Position numbers and translations under genes: made by a program. A stretch of DNA of 64,000 nt from IMG/VR virus record IMGVR_UViG_3300017786_003484, positions 1 through 64,000 of that record. One strand, written 5' to 3'. This document shows positions 1-33,309 of the stretch, in pieces. The notes beneath the pieces are model-generated. The model was given only the letters and a program-made list of their open reading frames with translations. It was not told where the DNA came from and did not search any database. Position 1 is the stretch's first letter, and each line of letters begins with the position of its first letter.

Positions 1-231
1 ATTATCTCCAGCAATACGTTTTAATGCAGTAGATAGTTCCTCTCCTGGATTCTCTTCTGGCCAATTCAATCCAGCACCAGCTACTGCAGGAAGTACTTGA
101 CAACCTACTTTTAATCCTAACCACGAATCAGCAAAAGCCTTACATAGTTTTATTTTTAATTTATTAAGCCCTTCAATATCAATGTGATTGTCTAAGTTAA
201 CGTAAGGCTTTCCATTAATTTTGTATATCAT
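1..231 (-). CDS. Hypothetical protein, N-terminal part (runs off window)
   Basis: Hand-translated open frame MIYKINGKPYVNLDNHIDIEGLNKLK... starting at 231, overlapping the thyX stop; not in ORF track. Confidence 0.6.
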   Translation of the reverse strand, partial: MIYKINGKPYVNLDNHIDIEGLNKLKIKLCKAFADSWLGLKVGCQVLPAVAGAGLNWPEENPGEELSTALKRIAGDN

Positions 232-1084
232 TCAACCCAAATTTTTCTACAATCTCTTGCATTTCTCGTTTACTGATACCAAAGTTTTCGCCTATCTCGT
301 CTATCCTATTAATATCAATTTCTCTAAACATAAGAGATTTAACAAATACAAGTTCTTGTTTACTCAGCTTTACTGATTGCTCTTGGTAATCCTCAAAGGC
401 TTCACATGCTACAGGAAACTTTTCTTTTACCATATCATACATTGCTCTAGCATATTCTTGTATTTCCCATTGTGCATGGCTATCCATTCGTAGTCTAGCA
501 TAATGTAAAAAGTTTTTAAGATTGGATTTCCAGTAACATTCTGTATATCCGCCTACTGGAAGAACTTGCCTCGCAGTCTCTCTAGCCAAGTTAAGGTTAT
601 CGGAATGTTCTGTGTAGAGGGAGTAATCACGATCCCATGACTCGTTAATATCGTCACTGATTCGTCTTTTTGTTTCTTCGTCAAGCTCTCCTTCTCTACC
701 TTGCTTATTGGTTGTACTTTGTGGCTTGATGTTCTCTGAGTTGGGTACATAGACTTCGTCTGTAAGTACCGAGTAGCGGGCTGAATATTCATTTAATGAT
801 GCCGTCCTATGTCTAACTAATTGCCTCATTACAAAAATAGGCAGTTTAATGTGAAACTTTACTTCGCACATCTCGAATGGCGTAGTGTGTTCATGTCGCA
901 TTAGATAACGTATTAATGCTCTATCACTGCTGGCTTTTTTAGTACCATCACCGTAACTAACACGAGCGGCTTGTACAATAGAGTTATCTGTGCCCATATA
1001 ATCAACTAGGCCAATAAATCCTTTATCTAATACTTGTTTGTAATTCGGGTCTTTATCAAAATCTATCTCCGAACATAATGTCAT
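215..1084 (-). CDS. thyX: FAD-dependent thymidylate synthase ThyX
   Basis: AARVSY, HTTPFE, RQLVRHR-x-SLNEYSARY and LRMDSHAQWEI motifs. Start placed at 1084 (ATGA overlap with upstream stop) rather than 1192. Confidence 0.95.
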   Translation of the reverse strand: MTLCSEIDFDKDPNYKQVLDKGFIGLVDYMGTDNSIVQAARVSYGDGTKKASSDRALIRYLMRHEHTTPFEMCEVKFHIKLPIFVMRQLVRHRTASLNEYSARYSVLTDEVYVPNSENIKPQSTTNKQGREGELDEETKRRISDDINESWDRDYSLYTEHSDNLNLARETARQVLPVGGYTECYWKSNLKNFLHYARLRMDSHAQWEIQEYARAMYDMVKEKFPVACEAFEDYQEQSVKLSKQELVFVKSLMFREIDINRIDEIGENFGISKREMQEIVEKFGLNDIQN

Positions 1085-1992
1085 ACTGTTTCCTTTGCTT
1101 CTGAGTTTCTTTCTATTATAGCATGTTTTCTGTTTCCCCACAACCTTTTTATTTCCGAAAGTGGAGCAAACGGTAACATTATAATTAAGCAAGGATCAAA
1201 CTCGTGCCATCTACCACTTACACTTGCTCCAAAATCAAAGCTACTTGCTTCTCTATGATGGTTATTATGCCAACCACTTCCAAAATGAAAATATCCTATT
1301 GGCCAACAGTTTGTACTACAGTCTTTGTTATTAAAGTTTTGGTAGCCTGCGGCAGGAACATGTCCAAATGTATTAACCATTCCGTCCATGTGTAAACTAG
1401 ATAATGCTCCCATAATCCAAAACCAAAATGTAAATTGCCATCCAAATAATAACAAACTAACTAGTAATGTTCCGTATATAATTTTATTATAATGATTATG
1501 CAACCACACAATCTTTTTATCTCTTAATAGGTCAACGGCATAACGAAAACTTACACTATCCTGTTTAATATCAAACTGCCAACCCATATAACTATGCCAC
1601 CAGCCGTTTTCTACAGGAGTGTGAATGTCCTTGCCTGGCTGATCACTAACTTTATGATGATGTCCTCGATGTAATGATGCCCACCATAGAGGACTTCCTT
1701 CTCCTACCATAACTGCTAACCAGTATAAGAATGGTTTCATCCATTCACGTGGCTTCCAGGATTTATGACTTAATAGTCGATGTAGTGTTAAATTATTTCC
1801 AATACCATCTAATGTAATCCATCCACATAACATTGCAACTAAGTACCACCATTCCCAACCAGTGTAAATTAAATAAGGTATTAGTGTTACAGCAAGTAAA
1901 TGATATGGTAACCAAATTGCTACTATAAAAGGTATTTGTTTTGTTTTTTTGTATAGGCCTACCTGCCCTTGTATCCAAGTACTAATTGCCAT
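1081..1992 (-). CDS. Membrane fatty acid desaturase (delta-9/DesC-like)
   Basis: Three His boxes (HRLLSH, HRGHHH, GWHNNHH), DxHTP-GWWHSYMGW, VNTFGH, transmembrane stretches. Confidence 0.9.
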   Translation of the reverse strand: MAISTWIQGQVGLYKKTKQIPFIVAIWLPYHLLAVTLIPYLIYTGWEWWYLVAMLCGWITLDGIGNNLTLHRLLSHKSWKPREWMKPFLYWLAVMVGEGSPLWWASLHRGHHHKVSDQPGKDIHTPVENGWWHSYMGWQFDIKQDSVSFRYAVDLLRDKKIVWLHNHYNKIIYGTLLVSLLLFGWQFTFWFWIMGALSSLHMDGMVNTFGHVPAAGYQNFNNKDCSTNCWPIGYFHFGSGWHNNHHREASSFDFGASVSGRWHEFDPCLIIMLPFAPLSEIKRLWGNRKHAIIERNSEAKETV

Positions 1993-2635
1993 TTATTCTC
2001 CTATTATTTCTGATTGCTTTGCCACCTTCTGAGGGTGCTTCTGTATCAGTTCTTCGTAGTATATATCTTCTAAAGTTCATATTATGAGGATGTAGTGTTC
2101 TTCCTAGCAGTTCATTAACTAAACTATAGTGTGTTAATGTTTTTGCTGGAATTGTCATCTCAACAAAGGTATAATACTTTTCCCGTAAGAATAACATAAT
2201 ACGACTATACGGATCTTCTCTATCTTCCGGATAAGTTAAAAAGAATTCATTTAATCCAATAGCTTCGTGTATATTACAAAGCTCTGTAACTATTTCTCTA
2301 AACATTGGTACAAATTTAATTCCCATTGAAGGCGACAAAATCCAAGCAAAGCACCAACTAGGAGAATGAGGTAAACGTCTTACTCCTACAGCTGAAATTA
2401 GTTTATCATTTTTATATACTCCCCAACAGGCTCGCTGACTAAAGTTTTTAAACTTGTCAGGATCTAACATAAACATTCTAAAAAACTTTTCTCTTTCTTT
2501 AACCTGATCAATATCAAATCCTACTCTAAAATCTGGATACTTACTAGGATCCACTCCATCGTAGATACTATCAGCAAGTTCTAAAACTTGTTGTAGATTA
2601 GTATGGTTAAATTGTTTTAGTTTATATGCTGACAT
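1982..2635 (-). CDS. Hypothetical protein, possible GNAT-like acyltransferase
   Basis: Beta-strand pattern CWGVYKNDKLISAVGVRR resembles GNAT core; translationally coupled to neighbours. Confidence 0.45.
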   Translation of the reverse strand: MSAYKLKQFNHTNLQQVLELADSIYDGVDPSKYPDFRVGFDIDQVKEREKFFRMFMLDPDKFKNFSQRACWGVYKNDKLISAVGVRRLPHSPSWCFAWILSPSMGIKFVPMFREIVTELCNIHEAIGLNEFFLTYPEDREDPYSRIMLFLREKYYTFVEMTIPAKTLTHYSLVNELLGRTLHPHNMNFRRYILRRTDTEAPSEGGKAIRNNRRINGN

Positions 2636-3564
2636 ACTGTTTCAATCCCTTGCTCTAAATTATGCTTTAATAGGTCTGTTGGTATAGTATACTCTACAGG
2701 AGTATAACTGTCTAATGAAGGATGTCTATTTTCTTCTACATAGTCCCATAAGTGCATATAGTTTTCCATACCATGATACTTTGGTCTCATTCTAAATTTA
2801 AATCCTGCCTCAGAGTAAATTCTCATTTTACTACTAGTCCATCCGTATTTGTATTCAAAGTTATCGTTTATTAATAAACTTGCTGTTGGTATATTTAAAA
2901 AAGCAAGCATTGCTTCAGGTGTATATGTGTAGAAATTATTTAATGCTATTTGTCCTGTCTTATCTTGGAATCGTCTCCACACACCGTCTTGATCTTCCTT
3001 TTTTAAGAAAACCCAACCCCACGTTGTCTCACCTGTATTGTAATCTACAGTTGGCTTCTTTTCTAATTCTACTTCATCAACAGACATCATAGGCTCTTTA
3101 AAATCCTCAACAACCTTCATTAGTATTTGTTGATAAAAAGTATAAGATTGATATTTCTCTGCAATGTCTAAATACTCTCCACTTAAACAAAACTCTTCTG
3201 GATCAAACTCTATAATCTCAACTTTCTCATTAAATTCAGATTTCATCATTTCCATCATTGGTCCAATATCATACATGTTAGATTCATCTTTAAATTTAAT
3301 GGTTGCCAGTCTCGGTTTAACACCAGCCGCCTTAAAACTACGAAATGCAATTTCGCTATCTAGACCGCCACTCATAAAAAGTGTTAAGTCTGGATACTGA
3401 TCAATTATCATTTGGGCAATGCGACGCCATTCAATCTTTGCACTAAAAGTTGGTCTAGTACAACCACCAATAGACATACTAGTAATATCTGTTTCGCTAG
3501 TTCTCCATACAGATTCTTTATCTTCGTTATACCAATATCTTAAATGATTGTTTAACGTGTTCAT
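2617..3564 (-). CDS. PP-loop (adenine nucleotide alpha-hydrolase) protein, asparagine synthetase/QueC-like
   Basis: LTLFMSGGLDSE PP-loop motif. Confidence 0.65.
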   Translation of the reverse strand: MNTLNNHLRYWYNEDKESVWRTSETDITSMSIGGCTRPTFSAKIEWRRIAQMIIDQYPDLTLFMSGGLDSEIAFRSFKAAGVKPRLATIKFKDESNMYDIGPMMEMMKSEFNEKVEIIEFDPEEFCLSGEYLDIAEKYQSYTFYQQILMKVVEDFKEPMMSVDEVELEKKPTVDYNTGETTWGWVFLKKEDQDGVWRRFQDKTGQIALNNFYTYTPEAMLAFLNIPTASLLINDNFEYKYGWTSSKMRIYSEAGFKFRMRPKYHGMENYMHLWDYVEENRHPSLDSYTPVEYTIPTDLLKHNLEQGIETVCQHIN

Positions 3565-3774
3565 TTAAATAAATTCCAATACAAAAACATATGCTCCATA
3601 GGCATACAAAAGTGTTACTGGAATAATAGCAACCATGTTAGGGTCATGAAAAAATTTAATTACCTTTTTCATATTATTATTCTCCGTTTTTATCCACATA
3701 TTAAAGTTAAGCATTATATAAAAAACCATAACAATCGATGCTAAACCTAAACCTAATATTATGCCTGTACTCAT
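3565..3774 (-). CDS. Small two-TM membrane protein
   Basis: 69 aa with two hydrophobic segments; abuts neighbours. Confidence 0.6.
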   Translation of the reverse strand: MSTGIILGLGLASIVMVFYIMLNFNMWIKTENNNMKKVIKFFHDPNMVAIIPVTLLYAYGAYVFVLEFI

Positions 3775-3932
3775 TTATCGTCCTCAAAGTTTTCTCCGTT
3801 TACTACCCAGTCTAGTCCGTTAATGTCTGCGTCATGTTGTGCTACTCTATACTCTAGTGCTTTGATTCTAGTATATAATTCATCAATAAGTTCTGAGGAA
3901 ACATATGTATATCCATTTTTAACTGTAGTCAT
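3771..3932 (-). CDS. Small hypothetical protein (53 aa)
   Basis: Hand-translated MTTVKNGYTYVSSELIDELYTRIKALEYRVAQHDADINGLDWVVNGENFEDDK; fills the gap, ATGA overlap with next gene. Confidence 0.6.
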   Translation of the reverse strand: MTTVKNGYTYVSSELIDELYTRIKALEYRVAQHDADINGLDWVVNGENFEDDK

Positions 3933-4566
3933 TTTGTATCCTTTTCACATCATGTTTAAGTTGATCCATTGAAAAGCGAGTACAAGGTTTAATAACTGCC
4001 CATTGTGTAGTTGAATGAACTGTTATTGGATTCTCAATAGGAACACAATCAGTCCACCAGTTACTCCATATACCACTAACACTAGAAGGGGTTTTGCCTG
4101 TCGTATGTGCTTGAGAAATAACTTCCCATATTAATTTGTTATATTCATTAAAAGTTAGTATCATTCCATTTTTATTATTTGTCATTGCCCAGTTTAAGTT
4201 TGCTGTTAGTAAGTGTTTTGTTATATTATGATTTTCTCTGTATTCTTTATCCATCCATAAACGATTTCCGCCACTAGCATAATCAGGATGTAAGTTAGAA
4301 TGTTCTACTGCACTAACGCCTACTATTGAACCTTTTTCTAAATCATATAATAAATCAATTTGTCCTGTATCTCTTGTCCAACGTCTATGCTCATTTCTTT
4401 CTTCTTTAATAAGGTATAATAGTCCTGAAGGTTCAGAATTATCCATATTAGGTATTACATGTGATTTTTCGTAGTCTTTAGTCATTCTTTGTAGGAATGT
4501 ATTGTATGCAGATTCATGTTTTTTAAAACTCTCTGCATTTGTGGTTTTTATTTCTAAACTTTGCAT
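3919..4566 (-). CDS. GNAT-family acyltransferase-like protein
   Basis: IVGVSAVE...GGNRLWMDKEYRENH resembles GNAT motif A. Confidence 0.55.
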   Translation of the reverse strand: MQSLEIKTTNAESFKKHESAYNTFLQRMTKDYEKSHVIPNMDNSEPSGLLYLIKEERNEHRRWTRDTGQIDLLYDLEKGSIVGVSAVEHSNLHPDYASGGNRLWMDKEYRENHNITKHLLTANLNWAMTNNKNGMILTFNEYNKLIWEVISQAHTTGKTPSSVSGIWSNWWTDCVPIENPITVHSTTQWAVIKPCTRFSMDQLKHDVKRIQNDYS

Positions 4567-4581
4567 ACTAGTATGTATCTA

Positions 4582-5109
4582 TCAATCGATGTCGTTGCTG
4601 TCCAAGCTCATCAGTAGGTGCCAACGTTTTTCGTTTCCACAATTTATTGCAGTATGTAACTCTCTTGTGTCGACTTTGAACACTCCACCATTGGCAGGTA
4701 TCTCTACTAATTCAGGAGGATCAACAAATAAAAACCGAGCTTGTTTGTTTGTATATGTTGCTATATGTAATCTTTGATGAGGATCTCTATGCATACTATA
4801 ACAGCTACGAGGCTCCATAATCATTATTCTTGTGCGATATACTTTCCATGGAAATTCGTCAAAGAACTTTTCCCAATATGTTCCAATTAAGTCTGGACGT
4901 AATTTATCCCATTGATGCTCGTTGTCGCCTAAATATGTTCCTGTACCTTCAGCATGATCTCCTATGCCGCCTGATTGTAATGCTGTTTGAGATCTAAAGT
5001 CTCCTAGTTCGTTATCCCATGCTAATTTTTTACATTCCTCATGCAACTGTTCTACATCGTTGATAACATAAGGCTTGTCGTTATGTCGCATACGGTACTT
5101 CTTACTCAT
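4582..5109 (-). CDS. Cupin/2OG-Fe(II) oxygenase, aspartyl/asparaginyl beta-hydroxylase-like
   Basis: RTRIMIMEPRSCYSMHRD...RLHI...VDTRELHTAINCG..RWHL: HxD...H triad in a double-stranded beta-helix pattern. Confidence 0.7.
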   Translation of the reverse strand: MSKKYRMRHNDKPYVINDVEQLHEECKKLAWDNELGDFRSQTALQSGGIGDHAEGTGTYLGDNEHQWDKLRPDLIGTYWEKFFDEFPWKVYRTRIMIMEPRSCYSMHRDPHQRLHIATYTNKQARFLFVDPPELVEIPANGGVFKVDTRELHTAINCGNEKRWHLLMSLDSNDID

Positions 5110-6374
5110 TATACCTCTCCTATAACCATAAACCTATTGCATTTTTCTAAGTTTAATTCACCTTGATAATGTATCTTCGATACTCCACATTCTTCAACAA
5201 ACTCGTCTAAATGAGAAAAGCAATTAACATGATCTGGAACATCAAACATATTGTTACCTTGTAATACAACTCTAGTTCCTTTAGGAAGAGACTCGACCCA
5301 ACCTCCGTGGTCATGAAAGTGTTCTGTTATTGTATCAACTATAACAAAATTTTCCATTTTGGTAAAGTCCATGGATCTAATATCTTCATTTGATACTCGG
5401 TAACGTTCAGTTGATACTCCTGCCATTGACATCTCGTTACCATCAACATCTGTTATGTCTGGTGCTGGTACATTTAATATACAAGATGGATCGTTAACAG
5501 TCTTGTCAATATCTACATTAACAACTTTTCCAAACTCTTGTTTACGACAGTTTGCTAAGAAAGGCAATATTCCGAGCCAACCTCCAACTATAATTGTAGT
5601 AGTATCTTCTGTAATCCAGTTTACTTCTTTTAATTTGTCTAGTAACCAAACTTTACTTTTAATTTGATTTCTACTTAATGCATCGTGCCAGTTTAACTTT
5701 GGACTATATGCTATTGCTTTAGACATACGTTTGAGTTCTGATTGTAATTCAGGAAAATAATTTATACTTGCATTATTTGCAAGTACTTCAATATTATCGT
5801 CAACTAAATTTTCTAACATAGTTGTTCTTCCTACTAACAGTCTTGCAAAGTAACATACCTCATAGATGTTTCCTTGTTTTGCTTCTGCTAGTTTATTAGC
5901 ACCCCAGGCTATGTTTTCTAATGCATCAGTTCCGTTTTCTTTTATCCAACCTGCTGTAGCCCATACAGGTTGAGCAATATCTTCTACTACTTGGCAACCT
6001 TTCCAAATTGTATTAATTACTTCATTGGGTGCAGATGTAAACTTGATATTATTATCTTCTCTATGATACATTCCAAGTGCTAGTGCTAGTCTTAACTGAT
6101 TCCATCTTGTTTTTTCTTTAGCAGGTTCTACACATGCTACTAAATCCTGAAAGTTTAAGAAGTTTTCGATTCCAACATTATAAAACAAATGTTCTAAGTC
6201 ATCGTCTGATCCTGTTTCTAAGTTTCTTCTAAGCCAATGTAAGCTACTACGAAACCCAATAAACTCCTCCATAAAATACAAAAAAGCTATTCTATTTTTT
6301 CTAATAGTATCTTCTTTACTTCCTGGTACTAGTCTAGTATTATTCTTTTGTTTTGCTTCTTGTAGTCTTACCAT
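5109..6374 (-). CDS. Class I SAM-dependent methyltransferase with N-terminal extension
   Basis: IIVGGWLG motif I, VNVDID motif II, DTITEH, LQGNN. Start at 6374 (TAATG overlap). Confidence 0.7.
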   Translation of the reverse strand: MVRLQEAKQKNNTRLVPGSKEDTIRKNRIAFLYFMEEFIGFRSSLHWLRRNLETGSDDDLEHLFYNVGIENFLNFQDLVACVEPAKEKTRWNQLRLALALGMYHREDNNIKFTSAPNEVINTIWKGCQVVEDIAQPVWATAGWIKENGTDALENIAWGANKLAEAKQGNIYEVCYFARLLVGRTTMLENLVDDNIEVLANNASINYFPELQSELKRMSKAIAYSPKLNWHDALSRNQIKSKVWLLDKLKEVNWITEDTTTIIVGGWLGILPFLANCRKQEFGKVVNVDIDKTVNDPSCILNVPAPDITDVDGNEMSMAGVSTERYRVSNEDIRSMDFTKMENFVIVDTITEHFHDHGGWVESLPKGTRVVLQGNNMFDVPDHVNCFSHLDEFVEECGVSKIHYQGELNLEKCNRFMVIGEV

Positions 6375-7369
6375 TACTGCCACCATCCAAACAACTTTAA
6401 GTTAGTTCTCCAATGTACATCATCATATGTTAAAGGTTTTTCAGGATGTAACTGTAACTGTTTAAAGAGTAAACTAGCACTTTCGTCTAATATTGGCAAG
6501 TTAAATCCGTAAACCTCATTTACTGCATCTTGGAGTTCCTTCATGCCTCTTTCTGTTATTGTTTCAAAACTCTTGAAGTATTCATTAAACCATTCGTAAT
6601 CCCTGATCAATGTGTAGTCAAAATTATTAAAATATAACTGTCTAATAGCAGTACGAGCACCTATAATACTCCATATACCATTTTTAACATCAGCACCAAC
6701 TGTTAGCCATGTTAGCAATCGTTGATAGTTTGCGGCATGCATTATTTCTTTAATATTGTCTTTATTAATTACTTTTCCAGCTTCGGTTGAAAGTTTAACT
6801 CCTTCTCTAAAGCCTACACGAAAAGCCTGATAAGGAGATGCATTTGTATAAACAGTTGAATAACAACCGGGTAGTTCCTTGTACTGTGATTCGTCCCAAC
6901 AAAAATCAACTTCATCTCGTTCAGTATTTGATGCTTCGTGACTTTTCATTGACATTAGATGTTCTGTATTCCATAGTTTTAATCCGCCATTACCATACAT
7001 TAATCCATTTGTAAACTGTCTACCGCCCCAAGTGTAAGACATAAATCCTATACCTTTAGGAAGACGTAATTCAAAGAAAGCAGGATCTACTATACTATCC
7101 GCATCAACTGTGATTACATATCCAGCATTAGGAAAAACCTGAGCCGCGGCTTTATGACAAGCATCAAATCCTTTAACACCATGTACACGTTGTACTTCTT
7201 GATGTGGTGTTGTTAGTTGTAATGTTTTCCAGTTAGCGTCAGCATTTGGCTCATCAAAACTTAGAAATACAATAGGAATATCTCTGGTAGTTCTAGCAGT
7301 ATGCTTTACATTTCCTGCAAGTATCTTTGCTTTATCGTCTTTTGATAGTTTAAACATTGACATTGTCAA
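6374..7369 (-). CDS. Glycosyltransferase-like protein (GT-A), paralog 3
   Basis: VFLSFDEPNADANW, HGVKGFDACHKAAA, VDAD (DxD), NGLMYGNGGLKLW, AFRVGFREGVKL. Confidence 0.65.
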   Translation of the reverse strand: MTMSMFKLSKDDKAKILAGNVKHTARTTRDIPIVFLSFDEPNADANWKTLQLTTPHQEVQRVHGVKGFDACHKAAAQVFPNAGYVITVDADSIVDPAFFELRLPKGIGFMSYTWGGRQFTNGLMYGNGGLKLWNTEHLMSMKSHEASNTERDEVDFCWDESQYKELPGCYSTVYTNASPYQAFRVGFREGVKLSTEAGKVINKDNIKEIMHAANYQRLLTWLTVGADVKNGIWSIIGARTAIRQLYFNNFDYTLIRDYEWFNEYFKSFETITERGMKELQDAVNEVYGFNLPILDESASLLFKQLQLHPEKPLTYDDVHWRTNLKLFGWWQ

Positions 7370-8216
7370 ATTCCTTTTCTAACCATTCCCAGTTATTAAT
7401 TAGATTCATTTTCTCACTATTAGCATATTTTAAACCATGCTTAACTCCAGCTTTTGCTCCTTTAATAACCCACTCTGCATTTAATCCTTCTGATACTGTT
7501 GACCATACATGATATCTCACAGATGCTTCGAACACTTCATCAAAGTAATTATGTGTTAGCAAACTTTCTCTATACTTTTCAATTATAATACTTCTTTTGC
7601 CGCCTCTGTATGATGACTTAGATTTGCTATCCCAATCTTGTTTTTGTATATGTTCTTCCAACCTAACAAATTCTTTTTCTCTTTGTTGTTCTCTTCTTTT
7701 AATTGCACCAAAAACTGAACCTAATGATGCTAGTTTTGCACACTCTCTAAATGCGCCTATAAACGCACTATCTGGTGTTGCGTTAAATCTTGTTTCACAA
7801 CTAACTTTAGACTTAGCAATAGTAGATGCTCCTATTGTTGTAGACAAATCAATTTCCCAACTGCGACCTTCTAAAAATGGCTTTTTAGGAAACAACTTAA
7901 CTCCGCCATATCCATATTCTAATCCATTGACTGGATTAACACTATTCCATACAATTACACACTCGTCTTCTGGATGATCCCAATGTAGTTCGTTTGGATC
8001 TGGAACAAAATTAAAATCAAAGTCATCTACAATCCAAGCATCAGCATCAACTACATAGAAGTTGTCTGTTGCTGACTGTTCTGCACAAGTTTTATGTACT
8101 TCATAGATTCCTTTAACATCTCTTACTTCTTTGATGTTTGGAACAAATTTTGTTAGTCTCTGGTAGTTTTCTTCTGCGTTCCATTCGCCTTGGGAAATAA
8201 AAAATACATCTAACAT
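7350..8216 (-). CDS. Glycosyltransferase-like protein (GT-A), paralog 2
   Basis: DVFFIS..E.NAEENY, VVDAD, NPVNGLEYGYGGVKLFP, GAFRECAKL. Confidence 0.65.
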   Translation of the reverse strand: MLDVFFISQGEWNAEENYQRLTKFVPNIKEVRDVKGIYEVHKTCAEQSATDNFYVVDADAWIVDDFDFNFVPDPNELHWDHPEDECVIVWNSVNPVNGLEYGYGGVKLFPKKPFLEGRSWEIDLSTTIGASTIAKSKVSCETRFNATPDSAFIGAFRECAKLASLGSVFGAIKRREQQREKEFVRLEEHIQKQDWDSKSKSSYRGGKRSIIIEKYRESLLTHNYFDEVFEASVRYHVWSTVSEGLNAEWVIKGAKAGVKHGLKYANSEKMNLINNWEWLEKEFDNVNV

Positions 8217-8220
8217 CTAA

Positions 8221-9195
8221 TCAACCTACTATTAACTGATCAACATCAGCTTCTCTAACTAATGGTGCTAGTCTGATAGGATTAAAGTAACTGGCTTTAT
8301 AAAACTTACTTGCTTCTTCATTTAGTGTAGATATTTCTAAACCCATATCTTGCTTTAATATTCTTCCTAGCTTTTCTACTTCATTGTATAATTTTTTTGT
8401 ATTCCAAGAGAAGTCGCTTATTACACAATGCTCATCTGTTCCGTAAAACTTTGGAGCAACTTCTTCATGCCAATATTTATTATGCCATTCAAAGTCTCGT
8501 ACTAGTGTAAAATCAAATTCATTTCTTTTTAGATTTGTCATATAGCAACCTAAACGAGCACCATATATTGCCCACATACCATTCTCTACATCAGAGCCAA
8601 CACTCATCCATATTAAAAGTCTTCTATGATTTTTATAATTATTTTTCTCTGCTACTTGTCGCCAATCCATAGGCTCACCGTTATGTAATGCTAACTTAAC
8701 ACCTTCTCTAAACCCTGCTCTATATGCTTGGTAAGGAGTTCTATTATTATAAACATCACTATAGATATTGTTTAACTGATGATAATGTATATCCCAGCAA
8801 AAGTCAACAGCACCTGCTCCGCTGTCTACTTCTTCATGTGTTCTCATCTGTTCTACTACTTTTACAGGCCACAACTTAATTCCACCATTGCCATATACTA
8901 ATCCATTGATTACATTTTTACCGGACCAACTTAATACGTCAGCTTCGTGAAACTTTTCTATATCTAGTTCAAGTTCAAAGAAATCTTCTCTTACTTTATT
9001 ATCTGCATCAATACCAATGAAGCGTTCTGTTTCAGATAGTTTAGCGGCGGCTTTATGGCAAGCATCAGATCCAAATACTCCGTGACTTCTTTTAGCCCAA
9101 GGACAAATTGATTGTAAATGAGCCCAATTCTCGTCTGCATTTGGTTCATCGTAACTGATAAACACAACATCATATTCGCTTATAGGCACACTCAT
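8221..9195 (-). CDS. Glycosyltransferase-like protein (GT-A), paralog 1
   Basis: DVVFISYDEPNADENW, IDAD, NGLVYGNGGIKLWP, AYRAGFREGVKL. Confidence 0.65.
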   Translation of the reverse strand: MSVPISEYDVVFISYDEPNADENWAHLQSICPWAKRSHGVFGSDACHKAAAKLSETERFIGIDADNKVREDFFELELDIEKFHEADVLSWSGKNVINGLVYGNGGIKLWPVKVVEQMRTHEEVDSGAGAVDFCWDIHYHQLNNIYSDVYNNRTPYQAYRAGFREGVKLALHNGEPMDWRQVAEKNNYKNHRRLLIWMSVGSDVENGMWAIYGARLGCYMTNLKRNEFDFTLVRDFEWHNKYWHEEVAPKFYGTDEHCVISDFSWNTKKLYNEVEKLGRILKQDMGLEISTLNEEASKFYKASYFNPIRLAPLVREADVDQLIVG

Positions 9196-10148
9196 GTTTC
9201 TACTCCAATATCTAGATTGTTTGCTTTATATAATAGGTTTACAGCTGAGTTGTCTTGCCAATCAGCAATTTCAAAAGGAGCATTTTGCCTTAGCATTAAT
9301 GCTGGAAGTTCTACCCAGTTAACAAAATTATCTGGGTCATCACCTTTAACGAGAGCACCTTTTATATTTCCTGATATATCATCAATAGGACTACCCGGCG
9401 TATAATGACTTTGTGCCCATAGCACATTATCTTTTACATATAGTGTAATATGTGTTCCAGGTCCTGGATGCGAGATTATTGTCTGCATCTCTGATGTTCC
9501 GTTAAATGTATAGTATTTTTCTGCTCTTACAAATGTTACTCCTTTAGATACCTTTGAAAAGTTTAAACGTATGTTCTTGTCCTTGTGTATTATATCATCA
9601 ATAACTAATGGATTAATTATATCCCATAAAGAAAATTCTACATATCCTTTCTCTAGCAAAGGTTGTAACTTAACATTAATGTTTCCTAATAATATATGAG
9701 GATCTGTGCTATCTGTTATATAGATTTTAAGTGGAGCCGTTTCTTTATTTTCTACTGCACGAGTTGTCCAAATCCTATTAGGTTCTAATCGTACAATACC
9801 TTTCTTAGGAAATAATACAAATTTTAATTCTGGGTCTTTACTTTCTTCGTATAATGAAGTACTATGCCATTCACTATAACTGCTAACTGTATATTCAGAT
9901 ATAGATCGTTTGTCTACTAGATCTAATGCTCCAATTTTTTCATTTATTGTAACAATATAATTATTTTGACTTTCTGTTCCAGACAGTATATTTTGAATTT
10001 TAGAATAAGATACACTTAAGGCACTAGGATTATTGTCTTGTGTTCCTGGAGATATTTTAGTAATACTACCTTTATCATTATACTCAACTGACCAAAATTC
10101 TTGTTTAGCTCGTTTTCTTTTTCTAACTGCAAATTTAATATCAGCCAT
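9192..10148 (-). CDS. Hypothetical protein
   Basis: ~318-aa ORF coupled within the operon; internal similarity between YITDSTDPHILL and LVKGDDPDNFV segments. Confidence 0.6.
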   Translation of the reverse strand: MADIKFAVRKRKRAKQEFWSVEYNDKGSITKISPGTQDNNPSALSVSYSKIQNILSGTESQNNYIVTINEKIGALDLVDKRSISEYTVSSYSEWHSTSLYEESKDPELKFVLFPKKGIVRLEPNRIWTTRAVENKETAPLKIYITDSTDPHILLGNINVKLQPLLEKGYVEFSLWDIINPLVIDDIIHKDKNIRLNFSKVSKGVTFVRAEKYYTFNGTSEMQTIISHPGPGTHITLYVKDNVLWAQSHYTPGSPIDDISGNIKGALVKGDDPDNFVNWVELPALMLRQNAPFEIADWQDNSAVNLLYKANNLDIGVET

Positions 10149-10842
10149 TATACACATACTCTAATGTTTTTTTAGAATTATCTAGCCATACTGGAAATAA
10201 TTGTACATGATTTTCTAGTTTAAAATTTCCATTTGACGGATAATATGAAATCCAATCATGCCATGTGTTTGTTGCGTACATCACTGGATCAGTTTCTAAA
10301 TCTCTAATACTTAAATCAACTAAAGGAAAAGTATCAAGAGAAGTCCAAGAAGGAAGTAAAGAAACCATTGCACTTAACCAATGCTGGAGGTCTGACTTTT
10401 CTGGTAGGTAATTTGTCCACAACTGTTCTTCTTTAAAGTTTGCTATTAACATTAAAGATTCAACTGCACTCATTGAATCCCCTATTAACATAATATAAGG
10501 AATACTTGTTTGATTATTTTCTTCTTGTACTTTTCTTTTTAAAAGTTTCTTGTTTGGGATTTCAAGTAACCTATGATCTACAAGTTTTCCTGGAACAATA
10601 TTTTCTTTATTTTCCTTAGCAATTTCTAATAGTTTAAATGATAGTGGCCTAGGAGCAAGTCCAGCCTGGCATAACATATCTCCATCTTCTAGTGGAATTC
10701 TAGACAGTTCTAATAATTGTTTTTTTGGATTATCTTCTAATAACTCTATATAAATTGTTTCAACATCATTATTAATTGTAAGTACATCTTCTTTAGTTAC
10801 ATTATAAAGATCTATGTCTTTTCCAAATACATAACACCTCAT
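10141..10842 (-). CDS. Hypothetical protein, possibly a degenerate glycosyltransferase-like paralog
   Basis: Coupled ORF between GT-like genes; no intact DxD seen. Confidence 0.45.
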   Translation of the reverse strand: MRCYVFGKDIDLYNVTKEDVLTINNDVETIYIELLEDNPKKQLLELSRIPLEDGDMLCQAGLAPRPLSFKLLEIAKENKENIVPGKLVDHRLLEIPNKKLLKRKVQEENNQTSIPYIMLIGDSMSAVESLMLIANFKEEQLWTNYLPEKSDLQHWLSAMVSLLPSWTSLDTFPLVDLSIRDLETDPVMYATNTWHDWISYYPSNGNFKLENHVQLFPVWLDNSKKTLEYVYNG

Positions 10843-11717
10843 GCCATACACCTCATAATACTTCTATAGTTACGAAGTATACTTAACTTGTTCATCATAT
10901 GTACATCTTCTCCTGTAATTCTTACTGCAATATTTTTATATTCGTCTGGCATATTACTTAACATAATCCAATCATTTGCATCTTTAACTTCTACAATATC
11001 ATCACGTTGATCTTGATAACGCATATGTAAAGGTATGCGTCCAATAAATCCTCCGTCTTGCATTCCGTCACATAAATGACAAGCTACAGAAGCGGCATAA
11101 TCAGTACGATATAAACTACCAGGAAATTTATATAAGAACCTATAATATTCCCAATGGTCCTTTACATGAGCCCAAACATTAAAAAAGTGTTCTGCCTCTT
11201 CTGATTTTCTCCAGTAAACTACAGTTGACCACCACATGCGTATTCCTGCATAGTGTAACCATCTTTCAGTAGTATAGGGTTCTTCGCAACGTAAATTCAT
11301 TGCGTCTCGATGCATTGCAACACTACTTTGTCCTCCAAATAATTTTTCTAAGTTATTACTACCAACTAGATAATCAGTATCAATTAGTATAGTCTCATCA
11401 AATGGAGTTAAATTATATATGTCGTGTTTGTTTGTGTTGGTAAATTGTGCATTAAAACTTTTGTAAGCACCGTCGTTGTGTATTCTAATATTAGTTTCGT
11501 ATTCAGGATCAGTCATTATGACTTCGTCCCAGAGTGTTTTTACTAGATTACTTTGAGATTTTTTCTTATTAAAATCTTTGAGACTTCTTTCATTGGTTAC
11601 AAGGACAACAGGTATCTCTGGCATATATTTTTTTAAAGCCGAACTTGCAACAGTCGCTAATCTCATATAGTCTATTTGCTCATTGTTATAAGCAAACATC
11701 ATAAAGCCTTTTGTCAT
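10839..11717 (-). CDS. Nucleotide-diphospho-sugar transferase (GT8-like)
   Basis: KGFMMFAYNN..IDY, TPFDETILIDTD (DxD), WSTVVYW, YRTDYAAS. Confidence 0.7.
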   Translation of the reverse strand: MTKGFMMFAYNNEQIDYMRLATVASSALKKYMPEIPVVLVTNERSLKDFNKKKSQSNLVKTLWDEVIMTDPEYETNIRIHNDGAYKSFNAQFTNTNKHDIYNLTPFDETILIDTDYLVGSNNLEKLFGGQSSVAMHRDAMNLRCEEPYTTERWLHYAGIRMWWSTVVYWRKSEEAEHFFNVWAHVKDHWEYYRFLYKFPGSLYRTDYAASVACHLCDGMQDGGFIGRIPLHMRYQDQRDDIVEVKDANDWIMLSNMPDEYKNIAVRITGEDVHMMNKLSILRNYRSIMRCMA

Positions 11718-12067
11718 TTTGCTCCTACAACTGTTTTTGTAGCCCTAGCTTTTTTTAACTTTTGTTGTTCTTTATATTTTAACTCTAATGCTTTATTATA
11801 TGTTTGTAAAAGACTTTTTAAAAAGTCTTTGCTTTTTTCAACTGCACTAGTATTGCCTATAGAATCCTCTATGTATAATACTTGTTTTGGATTTACAGTT
11901 ACTTGTGCAGATACATAACCAATTAGTTCTTGTGTTACTTTAAAAATATGATTATTATAGTTTAGTAATAACATTGATTCAACCCGAGCATCAATGTTTT
12001 TTCTTTGTGTTTGCAACGTTAATCTATAATTTGCAAACGCAAGTGCCTTTTGTAGTCTATCGTCCAT
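11714..12067 (-). CDS. Hypothetical phage protein
   Basis: 117-aa ORF, first gene after a late-promoter motif. Confidence 0.7.
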   Translation of the reverse strand: MDDRLQKALAFANYRLTLQTQRKNIDARVESMLLLNYNNHIFKVTQELIGYVSAQVTVNPKQVLYIEDSIGNTSAVEKSKDFLKSLLQTYNKALELKYKEQQKLKKARATKTVVGAK

Positions 12068-14917: not shown

Positions 14918-17900
14918 TTATATCGTAGGAACTACCTCAGATGCTCCATTTGGATCAACCTCTACTAGTGTTGATGTTGAAACATCTGGATTAAGGAAAC
15001 TAATCGTATTTCCATCTTCATCAGTAAGTACTGCGTCATCTATGCTAACTGTAAATTCTTCTGTTTCAATATTCATTATCAATGATTCAGTAATACCAAC
15101 GTTTATTGTATCGTTGCTTGATAATTTATTATTAAAGTTTGCTACTTTAGTATGATAAGGTTTTACTTCTTGTATATAAGTTGCAACTTGCTCTGCTAAT
15201 TTATCGTAAAATAAAGAAACGCCTCTTAAATCATCTGATGATGTTTTAGAAATATCTAAGTAAGTAGATTTAATTGCCCAACTTGAATTTGGAATTTGAT
15301 TAAGTGATTCTTTTACCATATCAAAGAAAAATAAGTTAAAGAATCCAATGTCGTTTGTGACTAATAAATCTTCTCTTAATGCAGTTAATAAACTTTCTAA
15401 TACTTCGCTACCATCTTCGTCCCATGGAAATTTATCCCACCTTGCGGTATCCCATGCATCACCTAATGATCCATCCCATACTGTATCTAGGAATTGTATT
15501 GTTCCACCACGTTGAAAAACTAATTCAATGTCTAATCCGTTTTTATTAAATGATCTTTCTAGCTCTCCATTTGAGTCTAGTAATCCAAAAATAGTAATAT
15601 CAGACGACAATGTTGTTATCTCTGATAAGTTATCTACAAAAGCCTGTTCGCTTCCAACAACATATCCAGTATCAAGGTAATCAACAAACTCCCAATAAGG
15701 TGTTAAATCTTTTACATAAGGTCCAAACAATGGCTGGTATGTTAATAGATGTGCATCATATGTTGCTTTTGAAACAACATTTGCCTGTAATAGATATTTG
15801 TTTGCTGAATAAACAAAATTACGTCTTGCCTCTTTTATATCTTTATACCATGTTTGTGGTAACGGAACATACTGATTTCCGTACCTACGAAGTGGATGAA
15901 GTTTAGTATCAGGCACTCGTCTTCTTGCTGGAATAACTGCTAAGTACTCTCCGTTTAATCCGCCTGCTTCTTGTACTGCGGTTGCTCCACTTACTACCAT
16001 ATTCCAATCACTTAGTGCATCTGCTACAAAGTCACTAGTTGATGTATAACCTGTTTTGTTTGTTATAAGCATTGGCCTATGTAACTTTTTCTTAGTTTCT
16101 AATCTAGTATCAGTTGATAATGCAAATATGTTTCCTAACGAGTCAACTAAGTTTCCAGTTCCTTCGTCAATTTGATAAATTGGTCTAAGTACTCCTTCTA
16201 CTTTTTCTCTAGTATCGTTTAAGAATTTTATCACAGGAACATCATTATCATTATAGGTACTTGTTGTAACTACTTGCGAAAGATTATAGTTTATAACAAC
16301 ATCTCCTTCGTTATAAAGTGTATTGGGTATCCATTCTTTTAAAGCATGTGTTCTTCTATATTGATCTCTACCAGATATACTTGTTTTAAGTCTACGAAAT
16401 AAGTATTCAGGAATAACACTTCCTGACTTTCCTTCGCTTACTAATAAACTATTAACATGTTGTTGTAGTCCGTCTGTTCTTTCGACTATTCTAAGTATTA
16501 CACTTTTTCTACTTGCTAAGAATCCATTAGCATTTGAAAGTACTAATGCGTTAGTTGCAATTGGACTTGCCCAAGTTATTCCTGCAATATCTGGACTGTT
16601 TAATGCAGATTGTATTGCAAGAGCAGAGTAAATTCTTTTTGCTTCTGTAGGAATATCTGAAGGATTTTTACTCCAATAATAATATTTTGTTACTAATGCC
16701 CCGTTGTTATTATATTCTTGATTTTCAGTATATCTAATTATACCGTCACCATCAGAGTAATCTATTCTTGCATCAGGATGTGTGTCTACTGCTGGTTCTT
16801 CATCTGATGAATACCATTCGTAAATTTCTACTTCACTATCTGCAAATTGCTCTCCCCAGTAGTTTGCTCTATACTCTACATTATTTCTTTGCTCGTATTC
16901 TGCATAACGTAGTTTACTGGTATCCCACCATAGTTTTCCAATCTGTGTGTTTTCCCAATATGTTGTTGCATCAAGTTCTTCGTTTCCAAATTCATCTATG
17001 TTGTAAACTGCCGGATCTGCTCCTTGCCTGTAGTTTAAATATTGTACTACATCGTCAATAGTAAATCCTTTATAAGGATCAAACAATTCAATGTTAGCAA
17101 TTTTATTTCCTGTATCACCATCTAATAATGTAATACTGTCAATTGCAGTTGAGTCTACCATGTTGCCTTGTAACGTTGTTGCTTCTTCGTTAATGATCCA
17201 AGCAGTTCCGTTAAATTCATATACTGTATATTCTCCTTGAGCAGTACTATCTGGCTCAAGATAAAACTTAGTTCCTACAGCAATATTTGTTAGGTTTGTT
17301 GGTAAATCTGCTGTAGTTTTGCCCTTGGTATTCATCATTGTTATAGATACTAGGTTTTCTGTTTTTGTTGAAACTCTAGTAGGAATTAAAATATTATAAG
17401 CATCAATAACTTTTGTAACTACATGAAAAGTTCTAATTGTTTCTTCGTTAGTTCCTAATATCAATAACATGTCATCAACTGCTAATCCATGTGCATTGGC
17501 AAATGTAACTTTACTTTCTTCTAATGCAGGATCACCATTAGGACAAATTTCATTTATTAATGCTGGAACAGTACCTTGTAAAATATTCCAACTAACTTCA
17601 GTTTCACCTGTTTCTGTTGTTGTAAAATCTTTGAAGTTAAAGTCACTTAACCATACTGTAGGAGGAAGTGAAATAGCATCTTCAGTAACAACAGTCCATT
17701 GTGCTGAATCAAATGCAGTATTTTGTCCACCAGTTACATTTTCTATTGCTTGATATAGTAAGCCATTATTCCAAACTCTATCACCTTCTTTGTATATTCC
17801 AAACTTACTAAAAGATCTTAATTCGTCTAAACGTTCAAATTTATCATCTTCAAATAATCCAATGTTAGATCCAAACAGCTCATTGACACTTCTTTTCTGT

Positions 17901-20900
17901 ACATTGGTTTCAACTAAGTTGCCAACTCCTGCACTTGGTAACCAATTATTTTTCTTGACATAGTCTGGTGTTATATCTGATCGAGCTATGGTTTTAAAAT
18001 TAATATCTTTTGATCTTGATACCCATCTACTATCATTCTTTAGTATATCAATAATGTTATCGCTTCTAAAGTCAACATCATCTTCGCCTTCTTTAAAACG
18101 TATAATCTGTCTGGTACTTGTCATGTCTTCTGCTCTGACTTCTATTTCCCAAACACGTCTATTACCTAACTTTCCAAATTCTCCATCAGTAAATAACCAT
18201 TGTTCGTTAATTTCTAAATCCTGTAATGTTCCTGGAATGTCAATAGCTGAATTCCTAAACAAAGCGTCAATTGCTAGATTAGTTCCTGATGCTGAATTTA
18301 ATCCCTGTTTGTAAGCAAACTCAACCGATTCATCTGAAATGATTTCTTCTATAATTGATTTTTTAGAAGGTATAATATCTCCCTTACTAACGTCACTTAA
18401 GAATGTGTTAAACTGGCTCTTCTCTGAATCTCTTGACTTAACAATATCTGTTGCTAAACTTTCTAATCCAGGTAGTAATCCTGTATTTGTTACAATCACT
18501 CCTTGTGCAAATGGCTTTCCGTCCCAGCCTCTTGTTCTTCTAGCAACCATTTTTAGATTTTGTAATCTATACTGTAATTGGCTATTATTGATTACATCAC
18601 CAAATCTAGTAGAGTTATTAAAGAAGAATATATGATCATAACTTCTTAAAGAGAAGTCAATAAATGTAACTTGCTTTTTTGAAGTAATTTCTACAAGGTC
18701 TTGTTTTTCGTTATAATTTCTAGATATTAATAAGTCATTTGGTTGTGCTAATTTTCCGTCTGAAAATATAATCTTTCCTCGTCTAGTTAAATCATTGTCT
18801 AACTTGTCTAAATGTCCTAGTTGGTGTTCGTATAAAAATCCTTTAGAGTCAATTGGTCCACCTAACCAGTAAGTATCTGTTCCCCAATTTTCACCAATCC
18901 AGGTCATTGCATCTAATGCTACCTGTTCCCAATTACCAACAGTTCCTCTTGAATTTAATTTATCAAAAACTAAACCATTGCGTTCTTGTAATGCTTGCAC
19001 ACCTATAAAGAATTCGTACAATTCTTGTTTTGTCTCAAACTTGTGACCGTAAGGAATATTAATAACATCTGTTTCATGTTGTTTGTATAATATAAGAGTG
19101 TCAGTATCTGTTTCTACAGTTCTTTGAAATGTTCCACTTGTACCATCTTTAATTGGTAATACAGTAGTGAAGTATCGTTGTTCTGGGTCAAAACCATAAA
19201 CTCTAAAACCGTCATCTTCTCGTTCTAGTCTTACTGCACTATACCTTAAGTCGTTAGTACCAACTCCTGCATCTAATGTTAAGTTAAAATCTTCGTCTGG
19301 AACAAATGTTCCATCAGATACTTTTGCATGTGGCATTTTAAATCTAGCTTCTTGATTGCTAAATCCACCCATACCAAACATTAACACAACTCCTAGATTT
19401 TCTAGTTCATTAATTACTTCTGATCCTGGGAAGTTTAACTCTTTATTACTTTCAAAAAGTAATGCTCCAATACCAACTGTTGGTCTTAGTTGTACCCAAG
19501 GAACATCTGGAAAAATACTATACTGTCCTAAGGCTTCTGTTGTATTATTATTGTTTGTTACAACATAAGGATTAATTCCTTTTTCTACAAATTCGTTTAC
19601 AGTATTATTATTTCCAATTTTATCAAAGATCTGATGGTATGCTCCTGCAGAGCTTCTTGCCCATAAGTCTTCCCACACGCCATAACTACCAATTTCCCAA
19701 GGTGCTCCGGCGGCGTCTTCTGTTACAGTTATTCCTAACCAATCATTTGGATGTATAAGTTTAACGTCTGTTGTAACTGGAAAGCCGTTTGGATATTCTC
19801 TTCTAGAGCCATAATCATATACTGCAGGTGTTCCTGGTTCGCTTACAAGACCTGTTTCTAACGCTGATTCTAATGCAACACGCTGGGTTGGCTCTCCCCA
19901 TTGATAATGATGATCCCACCAGTCTGGTTTATTGCTAAAGTTTAATATTTCCCAAGGACGGCTATCAGGCTGATAAGTTCCAAACAGTCTAATGTACATT
20001 CCTCTCCAACTTTCGCCGTTGTAATTCCATGTCCACGGATCTGCAAAATCAAAATCTTGTGAACGGTCTCTGAAGTCAATATCGTTGGATTCAAACCACC
20101 TAACTTCAGCTAACGAACGTAGGCTGGTAATATCAGGATTACAATATAACCCTGAATTTTCTCTTAACGTGGCTCCTGGCAATTCTATACAGCTGACATA
20201 AATTCTTCTTTCTAATTCTAATATTAAGTAGTCTCTTGGATCAGGTGCCGAATAAATGTTATCTTGGTGGGCCATTACTTTACTGCCGTCATGTCTTAAA
20301 ATTAAGAATCGATCAAACATTCCCCATCGTTCTCTAATAAGTTCTGGCTTGGTTAGTCCTTTCAATCCTAGCTTAGTAGGACTTGCTGGTACTCCGCTCA
20401 ATAAAGGAGTTGCGGAACCTCTGTAATAAATTGCTACTATACTTCCTTCACTAACTGGATTTGAAAATATTACATTAGGAGTAGTATCAACACTATATCC
20501 TTCAATTTGTAATATATTATCAACATAAACATATACATGATCTGGATCATATTCGTCTTGGTTTAATATACTACTACCAATGTTAACTGCAAAAGTTGTT
20601 TCGCTAGTTCCTTGAACAGTATAGTTAACTTTAAGCATATTAGTAGTAGAGAAAACCATTCCACTTTCAGCATCTGTTGAATTTGTATTAACTTCAATGT
20701 TTAATTGATCTAACATTAAATCTAATATTTCTCTTGAATTTGATGTTGTTACTTCGTATGCATTATTAAAAGTTTCTACTAACTTAATAAAACGTCTATG
20801 CCATCTCCATGCATTCATACTTCTGTTAATAACTACTTCACCTAAATCAGGGTTTAATCTTTGTGTTGTCCACATTCCTCTCATTGCTGAAATGTCAGCA

Positions 20901-32574: not shown

Positions 32575-32575
32575 G

Positions 32576-33226: not shown

Positions 33227-33245
33227 GTTATAATATCTCCAACTA

Positions 33246-33251
33246 TATTTA
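33246..33251 (-). promoter_or_regulatory. Late promoter-like TAAATA heading the baseplate operon
   Basis: Minus strand GGTAAATATAG followed by GGAG RBS and ATG at 33226. Confidence 0.6.
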
Positions 33252-33280
33252 CCGTTTTTATAAAGTGGGTAGATAACCTA

Positions 33281-33309
33281 TTGACAATAAGAACAATATT
33301 TGCTATACT
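33281..33309 (+). promoter_or_regulatory. sigma70-type promoter
   Basis: TTGACA-17 bp-TATACT, then AAGGA RBS before 33330. Confidence 0.85.

Follow-up and report, generated by a model that had tools for sequence, protein, structure and literature searches.

A virus-restricted cassette of PP-loop, predicted GNAT-fold, desaturase and hydroxylase genes in a large marine phage, with a possible role in tailoring an acyl-chain molecule

A large marine phage carries a tight gene cassette comprising an ATP-using PP-loop enzyme, two proteins with predicted acyltransferase (GNAT) folds, a fatty-acid desaturase and a hydroxylase. The cassette recurs, in shuffled gene orders and sometimes as fused genes, in many distantly related phages, so the most likely, although still tentative, reading is that it represents one uncharacterised pathway for tailoring an acyl-chain molecule and not a lone lipid gene. 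No description of it was found in the literature that could be searched. The analysed window is a stretch of 64,000 nucleotides from the IMG/VR record IMGVR_UViG_3300017786_003484, and the cassette and its neighbours are arranged in it as follows.

6374..12067, minus strand: upstream module A, comprising g331, g288 and g324 (paralogues), then g321, g236, g292 and g117; possibly glycosyltransferase-like
5109..6386, minus strand: g425, of unknown function, a frequent neighbour of the cassette
4582..5109, minus strand: Cpz10-type alpha-ketoglutarate/Fe(II) beta-hydroxylase (cupin, 175 aa)
3919..4566, minus strand: predicted GNAT-fold protein g215 (215 aa), accessory acyltransferase candidate
3771..3932, minus strand: small lineage-specific ORF s53 (53 aa)
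3565..3774, minus strand: small lineage-specific ORF tm69 (69 aa), with two hydrophobic segments
2617..3564, minus strand: PP-loop ATP pyrophosphatase of a virus-restricted family (315 aa)
1982..2635, minus strand: predicted GNAT-fold protein g217 (217 aa), core partner of the PP-loop enzyme
1081..1992, minus strand: SCD1/DesC-type membrane fatty-acid desaturase (303 aa)
215..1084, minus strand: ThyX thymidylate synthase, coupled downstream neighbour, probably not part of the chemistry

All seven ORFs between positions 1081 and 5109 described in an earlier note were confirmed, with no internal stops, and neighbouring genes overlap by 4–19 nt or are 0–15 nt apart. The only correction to the note concerns the extent of the coupled run, which is much longer than it had reported and comprises 16 genes, from 12067 down to 215. 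The gene for g217 overlaps the PP-loop gene by 19 nt, and the desaturase and thyX genes share an ATGA overlap. Scans for promoters and terminators showed nothing above chance, so the operon structure rests only on spacing.

The desaturase was assigned to Pfam FA_desaturase (PF00487; E-value 1.3e-15, 58.3 bits against a cut-off of 29.7), and its profile hits SCD1 (PDB 4ymk) at 1.8e-29, although the cut-off of the NCBIfam DesA equivalog was not reached (63.5 against 400). The three histidine boxes, HRLLSH, HRGHHH and HNNHH, sit at residues 71, 108 and 242 and are invariant over 20 homologues. Desaturases of this type with three histidine boxes are known from marine T4-like phages as the cyanophage-encoded DesC-like Delta9 lipid desaturases, or vFADs (Roitman et al. 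2018, PMC5776448). However, the vFADs are described as single auxiliary genes, while here the desaturase is the terminal gene of a cassette; this phage also has no psbA.

The PP-loop protein carries the SGGLDS motif at residues 65–70, of which S65, G66, G67 and S70 are invariant or nearly invariant over 85 diverse members. Its profile matches NAD synthetase at 2.5e-6, and also TtuA/NcsA, QueC, MnmA and GMP synthase, but all hits cover only positions 50–135. Similarity to the carboxylate-adenylating PP-loop amidoligases (NAD synthetase, QueC, asparagine synthetase/beta-lactam synthetase) stops after about 75 residues, and the C-terminal half, with its invariant KKEDQDGVWRRF, NNFY and GWTSSK motifs, resembles nothing solved. 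No curated Pfam or NCBIfam cut-off for specific PP-loop families (QueC, Asn_synthase, NAD_synthase, TilS/ATP_bind_3) was reached by this protein, and its relatives gave only sub-threshold hits. The family has at least 1279 representatives at 50% identity and is almost wholly viral. In clavam and carbapenem pathways, enzymes of the amidoligase kind appear to work beside 2OG oxygenases and GNATs as well; the structures 2wpw and 1nx4 were among the hits obtained here.

No sequence family was found for g217 and g215, including OlsB-type or any other Pfam GNAT models. Nevertheless, their AlphaFold models (pLDDT of 78.6 and 94.5, respectively) have the order of secondary structure elements of the GNAT fold (beta1-alpha1-alpha2-beta2-4-alpha3-beta5-alpha4-beta6-7). 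Foldseek searches gave more than 300 hits at E<=1e-3, and VIA-align comparisons gave Z scores of up to 10.3 for g217 and 13.9 for g215, with all top rows being GNAT. The nearest Atlas cluster to g215 is a viral GNAT cluster (TM 0.67/0.73), and a homologue of g215 in L063, a relative with a rearranged cassette, gave an Acetyltransf_1 hit at 0.01, below the cut-off. In the alignments, neither protein has the canonical Q/R-x-x-G-x-G/A acyl-CoA loop, since YRENHNIT (g215) and LSPSMGIKF (g217) occupy that position and the glycines are not conserved. Since binding goes through backbone amides, loss of the motif does not exclude CoA, but acyl-ACP, aminoacyl-tRNA or acyl-adenylate donors are also possible. 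A complex prediction gave no answer.

The hydroxylase is a full-length homologue of Cpz10/LipG, the beta-hydroxylase of caprazamycin/liposidomycin biosynthesis (PDB 7v4f; PMC9814697), with an E-value of 8.7e-43 and a similar size (about 175–182 aa). The facial triad and the 2OG-binding arginine (H107/D109/H152/R162) are invariant and align with H115/D117/H160/R170 of Cpz10, and the histidine pair of the proposed charge relay (H123/H172 in Cpz10) is conserved as H115/H164. The Pfam Asp_Arg_Hydrox hit is weak (0.007), but relatives carry PF05118. The phage genome carries four paralogues of this superfamily.

Among the remaining genes, s53 was found only in L001–L003, the closest relatives, and tm69 only in the identical contig L001, and neither small ORF is thus a core part. 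ThyX was identified by Pfam Thy1 (4.4e-55) and also lies near the cassette in L063. No Pfam or PDB hit was obtained for g425, although by eye its C-terminal part resembles a Rossmann/methyltransferase region; homologues of this part occur in L063 and in Ralstonia phage RsoM2USA, and the gene is present in 9 of 15 of the desaturase-cluster loci considered below. In module A, g292 gave faint glycogenin (GT8) hits at E of about 0.7, and g324 gave weak GT2/GT92 leads. This module is shared with RsoM2USA, which lacks the cassette in the region examined.

The inference of the earlier note that these genes form one functional cluster, the desaturase not being a stand-alone auxiliary gene, is supported. 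The block is syntenic in 60 IMG/VR relatives, down to 42% identity for the PP-loop protein, and the association extends far beyond simple synteny. L063 carries a desaturase, the PP-loop gene, an FA_hydroxylase, a g215-like GNAT, a second desaturase and the cupin, in another order and on both strands, and the relatives L067, L068, L069 and L079 repeat the set. We grouped viral desaturases at most 48% identical to the one in the window into 15 clusters under 70% identical to each other; the PP-loop gene lies within two genes of the desaturase in 14 of 15 clusters, the g217-type GNAT lies within two genes in 12 of 15, the hydroxylase is in the locus in 12 of 15, and the g215 family is present in 10 of 15. 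At least three different gene orders occur. It should be noted that the 33 distant loci are the best-scoring subset of at least 536 hits and may all belong to one broad phage group. Fusions of the PP-loop and GNAT domains exist in both orders, as GNAT-PP-loop (family representatives P0223, P0231 and P0299) and PP-loop-GNAT (P0286).

One could alternatively suppose that these are independent auxiliary genes lying side by side in a conserved hyperplastic region of related T4-like phages, with the desaturase alone remodelling membrane fluidity, as the cyanophage vFADs do. In line with this, the whole 12-kb block, including unrelated-looking genes and thyX, is syntenic in relatives, and the cultured Pelagibacter phage Mosig and Acinetobacter phage MD-2021a have a related desaturase but no detectable PP-loop homologue; in Mosig, the hydroxylase lies 32 kb from the desaturase. 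However, the adjacency persists through at least three gene orders and strand changes in lineages whose desaturases are only 36–48% identical, the PP-loop and GNAT domains are fused, and the PP-loop family keeps GNAT and hydroxylase neighbours even where no desaturase is nearby. Moreover, the occurrence of module A without the cassette in the region of RsoM2USA examined shows that the blocks separate when they are not linked. We consider this explanation unlikely.

The chemical reading of the earlier note, which proposed an N-acyl amide, a lipopeptide, or acylation of virion or host-envelope molecules, is plausible but not shown; no substrate is identified. As a working hypothesis, we tentatively propose that the PP-loop enzyme uses ATP to adenylate a carboxylate, a GNAT partner passes the activated or CoA/ACP-borne acyl group to an amine, making an amide-linked, long-chain (lipoamino-acid-like) molecule, the desaturase puts a cis double bond into its acyl chain, and the hydroxylase beta-hydroxylates the amino-acid-derived (or acyl) part. 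The order of steps, the carboxylate and amine substrates, and the lipid nature of the product are inferred. The product would alter the envelope lipids of the infected cell or act as a phage-made metabolite. A lipid role is favoured by the FA_hydroxylase, extra FA_desaturases and PhyH found in relatives, and fragments of the region occur in four marine RNA libraries. A similar combination of a GNAT-type N-acyltransferase, an Asp_Arg_Hydrox-family hydroxylase and a FA_hydroxylase/desaturase-family di-iron enzyme probably operates in the OlsB/OlsC/OlsE pathway, yielding a phosphorus-free amide lipid, and L063 has all three classes. The resemblance is at the level of enzyme classes only, as no Pfam or NCBIfam hit to an OlsB-type N-acyltransferase or a PlsC-type O-acyltransferase was obtained for any cassette gene, and the ornithine-lipid pathway probably has no PP-loop enzyme.

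Tailoring of a peptide or protein (RiPP-like, or a virion or host-envelope protein) appears less probable. In this case the hydroxylase would act on a residue, the GNATs would acylate an amine, and the PP-loop enzyme would make an amide or isopeptide bond, as asparagine-synthetase-like lasso cyclases do. The hydroxylase belongs to the Asp_Arg_Hydrox family, structural neighbours of the GNATs include protein N-terminal acetyltransferases, relatives add radical SAM/SPASM and B12-radical SAM genes, which are typical peptide tailoring enzymes, a conserved protein of about 110 aa recurs beside the PP-loop gene in the relatives L065 and L067, and weak Asn_synthase hits occur in PP-loop paralogues. 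However, the most constant partner is an SCD-type acyl-chain desaturase, which has no role in peptide chemistry, s53 and tm69 are not conserved, so the window shows no precursor peptide, and the PP-loop protein lacks the N-terminal domain of asparagine-synthetase-type cyclases.

It is likewise doubtful, although possible, that the cassette modifies a nucleoside, a nucleotide or a nucleic acid (tRNA or phage DNA), or builds a liponucleoside-like metabolite, with the PP-loop enzyme adenylating a base or a carboxyl group, the GNATs adding an acyl or aminoacyl group, and the hydroxylase acting as Cpz10 does. Cpz10, the only characterised close relative of the hydroxylase, acts not on an acyl chain but on the aminobutyrate moiety of a uridine-based antibiotic intermediate, and the nearest solved PP-loop relatives besides NAD synthetase are the tRNA thiolases and QueC. 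The coupled thyX gene, the possibly glycosyltransferase-like genes upstream, and the TauD-family dioxygenases beside the cupin in several relatives could also be consistent with this reading, as Cpz15/LipL is likely a TauD-family enzyme, but the TauD-like proteins match generic TauD/TfdA enzymes best. The desaturase, FA_hydroxylase and PhyH genes are left unexplained. The PP-loop protein has no Fe-S cysteine motif conserved across the family and is acidic (pI 4.9), which would probably not be expected of a nucleic-acid-binding PP-loop enzyme, and no other caprazamycin-pathway enzyme types (transaldolase, aminotransferase, nucleotidyltransferase) were detected among the neighbours scanned.

Relatives carry additional TauD, PhyH, Rieske, radical-SAM, methyl- and sulfotransferase genes, which gives the cassette the look of a diversifying biosynthetic cluster. 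A more speculative and less likely possibility is that the PP-loop enzyme and dedicated GNAT partners form a CoA-independent (or CoA-recycling) N-acylation machine in a previously unrecognised virus-specific system, the product of which is diversified by a changing set of oxygenases, desaturases, methyl- and sulfotransferases; large marine and freshwater phages would then make their own family of phosphorus-free amide lipids or lipid-like metabolites during infection.

The cassette is present in hundreds of uncultured marine and freshwater phage contigs, and DNA almost identical to this region occurs in seawater or marine metagenomes from at least 12 studies. Phage lipid genes have so far been treated as single auxiliary genes that adjust membrane fluidity, while a multi-enzyme, virus-restricted cassette would mean that abundant ocean and lake phages carry out their own small-molecule or lipid biosynthesis. 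It would also define a new PP-loop enzyme family with a built-in partner, the GNAT, offer new enzymes for amide-bond formation and lipid tailoring, and give function to part of the large "dark matter" of jumbo-phage genomes.

The window comprises the first 64 kb of a 244-kb IMG/VR virus record, rated by CheckV as about 74% complete. The record represents a T4-like myovirus, since the portal, major head protein, sheath-related protein and gp46/47-type nuclease all match PHROGs. A cyanophage origin was not supported, since psbA is absent. The minus strand carries an uninterrupted run of 16 genes from 12067 down to 215, in which every junction is an overlap or a gap of at most 15 nt, although promoter and terminator scans performed no better than shuffled sequences. 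The genes of interest occupy the last part of this run, and in transcription order they are followed by thyX:

5109-4582, minus strand, cupin hydroxylase
4566-3919, minus strand, g215, a protein with a predicted GNAT fold
3932-3771, minus strand, s53, a small ORF
3774-3565, minus strand, tm69, a small ORF
3564-2617, minus strand, PP-loop protein
2635-1982, minus strand, g217, a second protein with a predicted GNAT fold
1992-1081, minus strand, desaturase
1084-215, minus strand, thyX

Just upstream of the run, at 14918-23830 on the minus strand, lies a single ORF of 2970 aa, followed by ORFs of 1052, 727 and 696 aa, which may be fibre or virion proteins. At about 32000-34000, the GC skew and AT skew change sign and coding switches from the minus to the plus strand, marking a divergent transcription boundary between the early/auxiliary block and the structural genes.

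The desaturase passes the Pfam FA_desaturase model, and its profile matches mammalian SCD1 at 1.8e-29; the three His boxes and the SCD-type SD...D.H.P motif are invariant over 20 homologues. The PP-loop protein has no Pfam, NCBIfam or PHROG annotation, but its SGGLDS loop is invariant. A profile of 85 diverse family members matches NAD synthetase (2.5e-6), TtuA/NcsA, QueC, MnmA, Cap9 and GMP synthase, although only over the N-terminal 75 or so residues, while the C-terminal half carries strongly conserved motifs and has no known relative.

Neither g217 nor g215 belongs to a sequence family, and no sequence relation between them was found by hhalign. AlphaFold models of g217 and g215, built on 46- and 60-sequence alignments, reached pLDDT values of 78.6 and 94.5, respectively; both show the GNAT strand/helix order, and only GNAT proteins head the Foldseek, VIA-align and Atlas lists. 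The canonical acyl-CoA loop is not conserved in either protein, although loss of the motif does not exclude CoA binding. Prediction of a complex between the PP-loop protein and g215 gave no verdict (score 0.00), and is evidence neither for nor against binding.

The cupin is a full-length homologue (8.7e-43) of Cpz10, the alpha-ketoglutarate/Fe beta-hydroxylase that hydroxylates the aminobutyrate moiety of a caprazamycin intermediate, and the metal triad, the 2OG-binding arginine and the His pair near the second iron are all conserved. Nevertheless, membership in the caprazamycin pathway was not supported, with no other enzyme type of that pathway detected among the neighbours scanned. The two small ORFs, s53 and tm69, are absent from all but the closest relatives, and the idea that either is a RiPP precursor or a core membrane partner was therefore rejected.

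The enzyme families are expanded within this phage: the genome holds a second member of the new PP-loop family and four Asp_Arg_Hydrox-family genes in all (genome positions 130016-130957, 174141-174407 and 194564-195163). The phage also encodes, outside the window at 123781-125471 (5781-7471 of locus L076), a homologue of Gram-negative porins (Pfam Porin_4, 8.7e-20) directly upstream of another Asp_Arg_Hydrox gene (3.1e-13), which points to a Gram-negative host and perhaps to envelope remodelling.

Sixty IMG/VR contigs carry a PP-loop homologue at 42-100% identity, and nearly all of them retain the whole block from g292, an upstream gene, to thyX. This alone could reflect plain synteny, but four further results argue for functional linkage. 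First, a distant cupin homologue lies on contig L063, where the set recurs in another order and on both strands, comprising desaturase, PP-loop, FA_hydroxylase, g215-like GNAT, second desaturase, methyltransferase, cupin and second PP-loop genes, followed by radical SAM genes.

Second, an exhaustive profile search showed that the PP-loop family is large, with 1279 representatives at E<=1e-3. Its Atlas neighbours are 85-100% viral, no relative was found in a scan of 185,579 prokaryotic species genomes, and only 1 of 301 genomes had a member in the phylum of the single bacterial MAG that carries one. Several members are fused to Pfam-recognisable GNAT domains, located N-terminally in the family members P0223, P0231 and P0299, and C-terminally in P0286. 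No relation between either g215 or g217 and these fused domains was found by hhalign; the link between them is at fold level only. In one metagenome, a 183-aa predicted protein (P0161) joins the C-terminal end of a g215 homologue to the N-terminal end of a PP-loop protein (Pfam QueC and ATP_bind_3 hits), but it is probably a frameshift or a gene-calling artefact across the overlapping genes.

Third, the genomic contexts of diverse family members repeat the combination of GNAT and Asp_Arg_Hydrox, with or without FA_desaturase, as observed in loci L065, L067, L068, L069 and L079, while L066 has only the fusion and the bacterial copy has no partners. Three additional contexts were located on contigs too short to say much, though that of L079 was still informative.

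Fourth, we started from the desaturase, relatives of which are encoded by at least 536 viral stretches; the 33 loci at 36-48% identity, plus four others, were grouped into 15 desaturase clusters under 70% identical to each other. The PP-loop gene is within two genes of the desaturase in 14 of 15 clusters, and a g217-type GNAT is within two genes in 12 of 15; a g215-type GNAT is in the locus in 10 of 15, and the cupin in 12 of 15, and in one more by Pfam. The gene orders include cupin-g215-PPloop-g217-desaturase, desaturase-PPloop-g217-cupin and g215-desaturase-PPloop. However, these loci are the best-scoring subset of the hits and may belong to one broad phage group, and the cultured phages Mosig and MD-2021a, which have related desaturases, lack the partners. 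Mere co-location of independent genes is an unlikely explanation, and the weakest of those considered.

Upstream of the cassette lies a separate module, g292, g324/g331/g288 and g425, which is possibly glycosyltransferase- and methyltransferase-like, on weak evidence. At 6374-12067 on the minus strand, within the same operon-like run as the cassette, are three paralogues (g331, g288 and g324, with F-I-S-x-D-E-P-N-A-D and D-A-D motifs), together with g321, g236, g292 and g117. PDB profile searches for the g324/g331/g288 family and for g425 found nothing, g292 gave only faint glycogenin hits, and only weak glycosyltransferase leads (GT8, GT2 and GT92) were obtained. The genes g292, g324/g331, g288 and the C-terminal part of g425 also occur together in the unrelated Ralstonia jumbo phage RsoM2USA (209753-228673), which lacks the cassette in the region examined; the two modules are therefore separable.

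Relatives add further tailoring enzymes to the cassette, including a Rieske ring-hydroxylating oxygenase, a B12-binding radical SAM enzyme, TauD/TfdA dioxygenases and a sulfotransferase (L121 11380-12405, L149 8651-10198, L134 10852-11727 and L067 12094-12867), as well as PhyH, SDRs, radical SAM/SPASM and NMO genes, and extra PP-loop paralogues. This is the pattern of a diversifying biosynthetic cluster, and suggests lineage-specific diversification of the product. In two distant phage contigs, a protein of about 110 aa recurs next to the PP-loop/GNAT genes (L065 8461-8793 and L067 6175-6507; 30% identity, E 1e-7); it has no counterpart in the window and could be a carrier or substrate protein.

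The association of a PP-loop enzyme of this viral family, its GNAT-fold partner(s), an SCD-type acyl-chain desaturase and a Cpz10-type hydroxylase allows a tentative pathway to be proposed from the established chemistry of these superfamilies. PP-loop enzymes adenylate carboxylates or carbonyls, GNATs transfer acyl groups to amines, SCD-type enzymes desaturate long acyl chains held by a polar head group, and Cpz10 beta-hydroxylates an amino-acid moiety. We therefore infer ATP-dependent activation of a carboxylate, N-acyl transfer to give an amide-linked, long-chain molecule, desaturation of the acyl chain and beta-hydroxylation. The acidic nature of the PP-loop protein and the repeated recruitment of FA_hydroxylase, FA_desaturase and PhyH genes favour a lipid-like substrate, although membership in the ornithine-lipid pathway was not supported. 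Alternatively, the hydroxylase family, the radical SAM genes and the recurrent 110-aa protein keep a peptide substrate alive, while the relationship to Cpz10, the neighbouring thyX gene and the TauD genes do the same for a nucleoside-based product, but both of these readings appear unlikely.

DNA nearly identical to this region occurs in seawater or marine metagenomes of at least 12 studies from 2018 to 2025. Short contigs 99-100% alike to the desaturase, g217, PP-loop, g215, g425 and thyX were found in four marine RNA libraries, which is compatible with transcription, although DNA carry-over is not excluded and contigs cannot demonstrate a single transcript.

The closest known counterparts are the cyanophage DesC-like vFADs, which are single genes, Cpz10, the ornithine-lipid enzyme classes and the carboxylate-adenylating PP-loop amidoligases, none of which shares the architecture. 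Full-text literature searches found no description of the combination; a survey of pelagimyophages notes the beta-hydroxylase as a core gene and a stearoyl-CoA desaturase in freshwater members, without linking them. We consider the cassette to fall within phage lipid and auxiliary metabolism, while differing in architecture from these counterparts, and, although this is the less likely reading, there is a real chance that it is a categorically new viral biosynthetic system.
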